DNA of 64,000 nt from Blastocystis sp. Blastoise (taxonomy: Eukaryota > Protista > Bigyra: Opalinata). The translations under genes and the position numbers were made by a program. How positions within the stretch are numbered: the first letter of the stretch is position 1; each line of letters begins with the position of its first letter. Shown in pieces: positions 5,353-7,094 of the stretch. The notes below the pieces were generated by a model. It saw nothing but the letters and a program-made list of their open reading frames with translations. It made no database searches and was not told the origin of the DNA. The stretch spans positions 372,001 to 436,000 of the forward strand of contig JBBPEB010000029.1 in assembly GCA_039096225.1 (NCBI GenBank). Direction: 5' to 3'.

Positions 5353-7094
5353 ATGAATACGAAAAGCGTTTGTGAAATCACTTGTGGAGGTCTTTTAGCC
5401 TCTGTATTAGCTTATAAAGCTTATAAATATTTTTCTAAAAAACAAGTTCCTACTTCTAAGGCTGATGAAAAAGTTAAATATTTTATTGGTATCGATCTAG
5501 GTGCTACTAACGCTAAGGCTGGTGTCGTTAGAGGTGATGGTGTTCTTGTTGCTCGTTCATCTTCTTCTCTTGTTGATTATTCCGTCGAAGGTGTCGTCAA
5601 AGCTTTAGTTGAAGCTTCTCAAAAGGCTGTTGAAGAAGCCAAAATGACTTTCGCTGATATCACTGCTATTGGTGTCGGTTCTCCCGGTTGCATTGATTTT
5701 TCTGTATGTTTTGATAAAATGGTTATTTGAATATATCGTTATTAGTCAATATATAAGTAATTAACTTGATATTCTATAGAAAGGTGTTGTTACTAAGGCA
5801 TCTAATTTCCCTACTTGGGTTGATGTTCCTCTTGCTCAACTTATTCAAGATCAAACTCATGTTCCTGTATTTATTTTATATTGCATTCTATGTATTTTAA
5901 AATATATATATATATTTTTGTTAAAATTTTTTCTTTATAAATACATATATTAATATAGACTTTCTTAGAGAATGATGCTAATGCTGCTGTTCTCGCTGAA
6001 TTGTGGGTAGGTGCTGGTGCTAATTGTGATAACCTCGTTATGCTTAGTATGTTCTTATTTTATTATATATATATATGTGTTTTTTTTATAATAATAATTA
6101 TTAAAATCAATAATGTTAATAATGTTATATATATTTATTATTCTTATTATATATATAGTATTCTATATACTCTATACTATTCTTATATATATGTATATAT
6201 ATATAGCCTTAGGATCGGGTATAGGTGGAGGTGTAGTTACTAACGGTAAATTAGTTCACGGAGGAAGCGGATGGGCAGGAGAACCTGGACATCAAATATA
6301 TGAACTTGAAGGTATTCCTTGTGGTTGTGGTCAACGAGGTTGCTATGAAAAATTATAATAATAATAATAATAATAATAATAATAATAATAATAATAATAA
6401 TAATAATAATAATAATAATAATAATAATAATAATAATAATAATAATAATATATATATATATATATATATATATATATATAGTATGCAAGTGCTAATGCTG
6501 TTATTAATCATGCTAATGAGAAATTAAAAGCTTCAGAGAAACCTTCTTCTTTAAGAACCATTGAAAAGATATATATATATATATTGATTATTATAATATT
6601 ATATATCTATTATTATTCATCTAGAGTAAATTATATATATATATATGTATATATTCTATATAGATAACAGCTAAAGATGTAGTAAATGCAGCTAAGAATA
6701 GTGATGAAATTGCTCTGGAATGTGTTGAAATCGCTGCTAAGGCTCTTGGTATATGCTGCGTTAATTTATTCAGAGTTCTTGATCCTCAAGTATATATATA
6801 TTATAATAATAGTATTAATAACAATAATAATTATTATACTTTTTCTATTATATTCTATTTTTATTATGTAATATAAAATAAATATTATATATTAAACAAA
6901 TATTATATATATAGGTTATTGTATTCACGGGTGGTCTTGCAAATGCTGGTGATTTCTTATTAGATAAAATCAAAGGATATATTGATCATTATAATTGGAC
7001 TATTCAACCTTCGACATGTCAAATTCTTCCATCTAGAGCTGGACCTGATGCTGGTATTATTGGAGCTGCTGCTGTTGGTAGAGCTAATCTTTAA
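5353..7094 (+). CDS. ROK-family sugar kinase (glucokinase-like), 6 introns, two non-canonical
   Basis: Motifs IGIDLGATN, GVGSPG, ENDANAA, LGSGIGGG, GWAGEPGH, CGCGQRGCYE (CxCGxxGCxE Zn site) and AGIIGAA. Short hydrophobic N-terminal extension. Confidence 0.93.

Follow-up and report, generated by a model that had tools for sequence, protein, structure and literature searches.

A repeat-filled, probably inherited intron with a degenerate donor in a ROK-family sugar kinase gene of tortoise-gut Blastocystis

Intron 4 of a ROK-family sugar kinase gene of Blastocystis sp. Blastoise, which is contained in a window of 64,000 nt (contig JBBPEB010000029.1, positions 372,001 to 436,000), was found to consist of TAA and TA repeats and to start with T instead of G. 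It is best explained as a real, inherited and spliced U2-type intron whose donor has degenerated, a reading to which we assign a probability of about 0.55, whereby we infer the correctness of the DNA base, splicing in vivo and the machinery that is used for intron 4. According to this model, (TAA)n and (TA)n repeats would have taken over the body of an inherited U2-type intron in a lineage with 22% GC, and the first base of this intron would have changed from G to T. The splice information left would then comprise positions +2 to +6 (TATAA), the acceptor TATATAG and UAAUAAU heptamers located at least 35 nt upstream of the AG, and the intron would be excised so as to join AAA (Lys) precisely to TAT (Tyr), most likely through an ordinary major spliceosome that tolerates a non-G base at +1. 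Intron 4 would thereby be one of a minority of introns in this genome whose +1 position is occupied by T or A, the base with which the downstream exon also begins (Table 1).

Table 1. Positions of the ROK kinase gene, of the elements of its intron 4 and of further introns with an unusual first base (window positions unless a contig is given).
Feature	Position	Strand	Remarks
ROK-family sugar kinase gene, 7 exons and 6 introns	5353..7094	+	corresponds to public protein KAK8793378.1 (P0002)
Exon 4	6207..6352	+	ends ...CGCGQRGCYEK (zinc-binding ROK motif); in frame 6209-6352
Intron 4, phase 0, TT...AG	6353..6481	+	129 nt; ROK gene
Donor hexamer TTATAA	6353..6358	+	G at 6353 would give GTATAA, near the local consensus GTATAT/GTATGT
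(TAA)31	6356..6448	+	as RNA about 30 overlapping UAAUAAU heptamers, candidate degenerate branch sites
(TA)16 + G	6449..6481	+	acceptor TATATAG, usual 3' end of the introns of this gene
Exon 5	6482..6568	+	starts YASANAV; its first base is T, as is the odd +1 base of intron 4
Intron 5, ATATAT...ATATAG	6569..6663	+	95 nt; junction between TIEK and ITAK; flanks form the 5-nt direct repeat AGATA
RPN7 intron, ATATAT...TATAG (AT-AG)	L028:1723-1961		PF10602 profile positions 116 and 117 contiguous across the junction
NDUFS7 intron, TTATAT...TATAG (TT-AG)	L040:1891-2038	-	PF01058 matched up to 59/60 and from 61
Intron of CDC40/PRP17-like WD40 gene (splicing factor), TTATAT...ATATAG	556-724		169 nt
Kinase-like gene, candidate TA-AG intron	17242-17448		...HHPLIQ, then TATTTATATA...TATATAG

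A sequence-only reading of this DNA had described intron 4 as made of TAA and TA repeats with a single terminal G, and both the base counts (A 79, T 49, G 1 and C 0 in 129 nt) and the layout (TTA 6353-6355, (TAA)31 6356-6448, (TA)16 6449-6480, G 6481) agree with that description. GT is absent from all 129 nt in any register, and the likewise claimed absence of C and of a pyrimidine tract is borne out by the sequence; a pyrimidine tract is also absent from the other introns of the gene. When exon 4 is continued in its frame, the intron reads TTA TAA TAA and so forth with stops from codon 2 on, and these in-frame stops, which had been pointed out before, render it untranslatable. The sole register that would yield the same mRNA is a slide by 1 nt, resulting in TA...GT, and none of the upstream GT donors is in frame with the single AG of the intron. 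The acceptor (TATATAG at 6475-6481, followed by TAT) is of the same type as those of the other five introns of the gene, where ttctatag, ttaatatag and tatatatag are found. Such repeats are frequent in the window: when runs of at least 8 units are counted, there are 17 of (TAA/TTA)n and 48 of (TA)n. What is unusual in intron 4 is that one pair of repeats constitutes the whole intron and that, in addition, the G at +1 is missing, the T found at this position being its sole real anomaly.

The gene harbouring this intron is present as a single copy in the genome. Its exons were searched one at a time, while whole-length comparisons were carried out with the public protein, and membership in Pfam family PF00480 was established by matches of exon 4 to profile positions 130-177 (E 4.4e-13), of exon 1 to 2-69, of exon 3 to 101-127, of exon 6 to 195-236 and of exon 7 to 237-290, with the CxCGxxGCxE zinc motif reading CGCGQRGCYE. 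Exon 4 as query against 1.8 billion representative proteins retrieved a 100% identical protein of 352 aa, namely KAK8793378.1, 'hypothetical protein WA158_004737, partial [Blastocystis sp. Blastoise]'. Its best bacterial relatives are ROK glucokinases of Planctomycetota (44-48% identical), and the gene product is a bacterial-type glucokinase whose gene was probably acquired horizontally.

The public protein reads ...GCYEKYASANAV... across intron 4 and ...TIEKITAKDVV... across intron 5 (in longer form ...CGCGQRGCYEKYASANAVINH... and ...SSLRTIEKITAKDVV...), meaning that the underlying model removes exactly 6353-6481, joining CYEK to YASA, and 6569-6663, joining TIEK to ITAK. Alignment of this protein with two Blastocystis orthologues and four bacterial ROK glucokinases (n = 7) revealed no gap at the intron 4 junction and identified E223, Y225 and S227 as invariant, these residues being part of the conserved context GC-x-E-x-Y-A/G-S. 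As the alignment is gapless and the PF00480 profile coverage ends with exon 4, exact removal of the intron is needed, as the sequence-only reading had held for the kinase. Moreover, exons 5-7 keep all 16 of the 16 invariant residues downstream of the junction, which argues against decay behind the odd donor. According to passages of the genome paper, the gene models of this isolate were derived using BRAKER3, StringTie and Mikado, whereby introns supported by RNA-seq were favoured (PMC12129017); an ab initio predictor would not be expected to yield a TT-AG intron. Protein searches with a 101-aa piece spanning the junction returned distant ROK fragments only, those with the open frame around exon 4 returned fragments of human-type Blastocystis only, and a JGI metagenome scan returned relatives at 28% identity only. 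Hence, the protein searches yielded no transcript-derived or genomic fragment of the gene from other data sets, nor did the collections searched hold a transcript contig or a second-strain copy of it.

Several routes to an intact protein other than splicing at these borders were considered and rejected. Read-through is incompatible with the in-frame stops; the gene itself ends with TAA, and tortoise isolates were described in passages of the genome paper to use canonical stop codons (PMC12129017). Upstream GT donors are either out of phase with the single AG or entail loss of the zinc motif. Translational bypass would have to cover distances that are too great, and intron 5 shifts the reading frame. 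DNA-level excision, as is the case for ciliate IESs, was dismissed on the ground that the position is that of an inherited intron.

The age of this position is documented by another Blastocystis lineage, in which the gene for the orthologous protein (P0153, 65% identity) is interrupted by seven introns, as seen on four gut-metagenome contigs of 47% GC (L016-L019). Between GQVGCYEK and YASANGLI, this lineage possesses a 35-nt GT-AG intron in phase 0 that runs gtacttttt...cccctag, establishing positional homology of intron 4 with a bona fide spliceosomal intron. Both introns share the boundary between Lys and Tyr, the phase, the AG and the need for exact removal, whereas intron 4 starts with T and consists, over 129 nt, of nothing but (TAA)n(TA)n as compared to 35 nt of mixed, pyrimidine-rich sequence. 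The positions of ROK introns 1, 2, 3, 5 and 6 are common to the L016-L019 lineage as well, with the orthologue of intron 5 being GT-AG in L016, and since all six positions are thus shared, all six introns were inherited. An identical protein, representing the spliced product, is encoded without introns on ENA contig L013. All seven introns are absent there, yet the 56-nt spacing to a convergent Rad51 neighbour is the same, and L013 differs from L016 by synonymous substitutions; L013 is either a cDNA-like assembly or derives from a strain without any intron left.

The subtype 3 orthologue (P0154, Blastocystis sp. DL, 56% identity, contig L014) in turn possesses introns only after residues 115, 144, 173/174 and 203 and none between CYEK and YASA. 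The comparison of orthologues at this site, which the sequence-only reading had suggested as a check, therefore came out both ways, with an intron in the L016-L019 lineage and none in subtype 3. On this comparison of gene structures, the tortoise lineage has lost the intron located between GHQ and IY and subtype 3 has lost the three 3' introns; intron 4 itself is an old intron whose body was replaced by repeats.

As to the machinery, two identical copies of U1 were identified in the genome, both of which possess a canonical 5' end (ATACTTACCT), so that no variant U1 was found which would explain the TT donor, and U2 carries the standard GTAGTA box. Both snRNAs are thus ordinary. The G at +1 is among the most conserved nucleotides of eukaryotic genes and is involved in each of the two catalytic steps of splicing, and a non-G base at +1 is poorly tolerated by known spliceosomes when paired with a 3' AG. 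Canonical U1 would mispair at +1 of intron 4, which, like this poor tolerance, counts against the reading of the intron as still spliced. Measured against the U2-type pattern, the intron ends with the required AG but starts with TTATAA in place of GT or GC. A CURAY-type branch point had been stated to be missing, which holds for the strict CURAY/yUnAy forms. The (UAA)n tract nevertheless provides about 30 overlapping UAAUAAU heptamers as candidate degenerate sites, each with 5/7 matches to UACUAAC and the last one residing about 35 nt from the AG, where a U2-type branch site that pairs with the GUAGUA box is expected at 10-50 nt; (TAA)n may serve as branch site during splicing. A TA-repeat body, the ending TATAG and the lack of a pyrimidine tract are furthermore common to intron 4 and to the G(TA)nG or GTATAT...TATAG microsatellite introns of this genome, of which ROK intron 6 is an example; those keep the G at +1 whereas intron 4 has T.

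U12-type introns were reported to be abundant and rich in AT-AC termini in Blastocystis ST1 (PMC10639083). Intron 4 resembles them in its non-GT start, in its phase 0 and in that varied termini are tolerated, but its donor reads TTATAATA, with no [A/G]TATCCTT, it lacks a TCCTTAAC-like branch box and it contains no C. In the absence of any matching motif, a U12-type identity of intron 4 was rejected.

Intron 4 is not the only odd intron of the gene or of the genome. For intron 5, none of the six alternative registers (0/6) gives GT-AG, and an inner GTAAAT maintains the frame only by adding a 19-aa insert of Ile, Tyr and Leu, which is absent from the orthologues and from the public model. Comparable introns were identified in the genes for RPN7, NDUFS7 and the CDC40/PRP17-like protein (Table 1). 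In the latter gene the two neighbouring introns are GT-AG, and the putative junction of the odd intron was placed from the sequence and by comparison with the human protein; searches of the PDB with the CDC40 exons gave generic WD40 matches which did not pin the junction. The candidate intron of the kinase-like gene has no frame-keeping GT/GC-AG solution, and the exon following it starts TTATATGGT (LYGVTF...), hence with TTATAT; its upstream exon (17071-17241) has no Pfam match.

The frequency of such introns was estimated by a survey of the window, in which coding blocks were defined by codon usage and adjacent pairs of blocks were scored for a frame-keeping GT/GC-AG solution. This solution exists for 61 of the 67 pairs, the test being permissive as it also passes intron 5 of the ROK gene, whose AT-AG ends follow from homology. 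Among the six pairs without a solution, three look genuinely odd (CDC40, ROK intron 4 and the kinase-like gene), one results from block overshoot and two are ambiguous, and ROK intron 5 adds a fourth odd intron to the survey's three. In the introns of HSP70 paralogues, a set not picked for oddity, 13 out of 13 are GT-AG. According to the survey, introns with a non-G base at +1 roughly account for 5%, i.e., about one in 20, of the introns of this genome.

In five of five of these introns (ROK introns 4 and 5, RPN7, NDUFS7 and CDC40), the downstream exon begins with the same odd base that occupies +1, and in RPN7, NDUFS7 and CDC40 it begins with a copy of the whole first hexamer of the intron. 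In about 20 canonical introns that were read, the downstream exon begins with G in approximately half of the cases and with T or A in only about 15-20% each, and five copies out of five are therefore unlikely to be due to chance. Intron 4 follows this copy rule for 1 nt (T) only, which on its own could be chance. These observations tentatively suggest, at odds that we place somewhat below even, that the 5' splice-site rule is relaxed in tortoise-gut Blastocystis, whereby about one in 20 introns would carry T or A at +1, with the odd base being the first base of the next exon, and would still be removed by a major spliceosome that is ordinary in all other respects. The copy rule may be a trace left when spliced cDNA was used for repair or conversion, in a genome from which introns are actively disappearing. 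Such repair or conversion would fit the six-base mirrors as well, which is only an idea.

The most serious objection to the reading of intron 4 as a spliced intron with a degenerate donor is that the T at 6353 is wrong or represents one allele only, as might result from a consensus or polishing error or from a polyploid or mixed population, in which case the real intron would be GTATAA...TATATAG with a microsatellite body. This was judged unlikely, though it has to be taken seriously. A single substitution at 6353 restores a canonical donor, and a GT is what both the L016-L019 orthologue and the canonical U1 lead one to expect. The genome fits isolate Rus-B, obtained from a Russian tortoise and named 'Blastoise' at NCBI, and passages of the genome paper give 33.3 Mb and 23.1% GC for it (Genome Res 2025, PMC12129017); in the assembly used here (33.34 Mb, 34 contigs), the GC content amounts to 18-29% in 2-kb windows, and the lineage GC of tortoise-gut Blastocystis is 22%. 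According to the same passages, R9 Nanopore reads from a xenic culture were assembled using Flye --meta and racon and subsequently polished using PolyPolish and POLCA with MiSeq reads (PMC12129017). The repeat context is difficult, and this Nanopore chemistry is error-prone in low-complexity sequence. However, position 6353 adjoins unique exon sequence which is a good anchor for short reads, and substitution errors are rare once an assembly is polished with them. A second intron with a non-G +1 base is found in the same gene, and the essential genes for RPN7 and NDUFS7 show the same with junctions that are contiguous in Pfam profiles. Nearby G(TA)n donors are intact, and as the donor of intron 6 (GTATATATAT) was assembled normally and the 13 introns of HSP70 paralogues are intact too, there is no blanket loss of G in front of TA runs. 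A polishing artefact caused by spliced reads would require the next exon to mimic the start of the intron; this is untrue for ROK introns 4 and 5, and by this reasoning on how aligners should behave the artefact was judged not to account for intron 4.

Lineages with many introns outside GT-AG exist, namely euglenids and diplonemids with their nonconventional introns, and Fritillaria reportedly possesses many as well. It was considered that intron 4 might be removed independently of its terminal dinucleotides, guided by pairing of its ends or by short direct repeats, for which euglenids and Amoebophrya provide precedents. In the latter, non-canonical introns possess direct repeats of 3-5 nt over their borders together with inverted repeats of 8-20 nt that join the intron ends (PMC7789003). 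Direct repeats indeed flank the odd introns described here (6 nt for RPN7, NDUFS7 and CDC40, 5 nt for ROK intron 5), and TA-rich ends can pair, as could the first five nucleotides of intron 4 (UUAUA) with its last five (UAUAG). Intron 4 itself, however, has a direct repeat of 1 nt only (T), its ends pair over 5 nt at most and no inverted repeat joins them. Its predicted fold (MFE -14.7 kcal/mol, z = +1.35) is not more structured than those of shuffled sequences and pairs (UA)16 with itself rather than one intron end with the other. While many introns escape GT-AG in Amoebophrya, about 5% are odd here, with the AG unchanged and +1 as the only deviating position. Since, furthermore, the position was inherited from a GT-AG intron and all odd examples retain AG and consensus-like positions +2 to +6, normal machinery is indicated and repeat-guided removal of intron 4 appears quite improbable.

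Slightly less credit still was given to the idea that the DNA is right but intron 4 is no longer spliced, the gene being a disabled allele or young pseudogene which encodes a protein truncated at ...CYEKL. Replacement of G by T at +1 is a textbook case of a mutation that abolishes splicing, the gene has two affected donors among its six, and it encodes an accessory, horizontally acquired kinase. Against this, it is single-copy, all seven exons are open with the invariant residues of exons 5-7 intact, the public, transcript-based model joins the exons, and donors of these types are also present in indispensable genes. The proposal put forward in the sequence-only reading, a microsatellite that expanded inside coding sequence and turned into an intron, would fit a length that is a multiple of 3 and an intron composed of two microsatellites and nothing else, but since a distantly related Blastocystis lineage has a GT-AG intron at precisely this site, in the same phase, and shares six of six positions, such a de novo origin is hardly credible.

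Non-canonical introns are not mentioned in those passages of the genome paper that were searched (PMC12129017), and as far as these passages go, a spliceosomal intron with a non-G base at +1 is unpublished for this lineage. If introns of the TT-AG and AT-AG class are spliced by U1 and U2 of standard appearance, they offer a natural test bed for those parts of the 5' splice site that are indispensable. Should the rule on the 5' splice site truly be relaxed, intron 4 would represent the minimal case, being efficiently recognised without any G or C except the terminal G. Splicing of this class would likewise reveal how introns persist under extreme AT drift and invasion by microsatellites. Such introns break gene predictors that accept only GT-AG, leading to fragmented annotations of these genomes. 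If, on the other hand, the base is an assembly error, a specific type of error is flagged in a published reference genome.

Some further observations concern the gene and its surroundings. KAK8793378.1 is marked as partial and stops at ...AAAVGRA, while the genome goes on with AAT CTT TAA (Asn-Leu-stop) at 7086-7094, so that the public model ends 6 nt before an intact stop codon. Positions 5353-5490 encode an N-terminal extension of about 45 aa with a hydrophobic stretch, which is common to the Blastocystis ROK kinases (P0153, P0154) and absent from the bacterial relatives; it has the appearance of a targeting signal or membrane anchor gained after horizontal transfer. Elsewhere in the window, a (TAA)63 run (58378-58566) resides inside a 462-aa ORF of a transporter-like gene (57743-59131), where it would be read in the ORF frame as about 63 identical residues, the same type of repeat thus being tolerated as coding sequence there.
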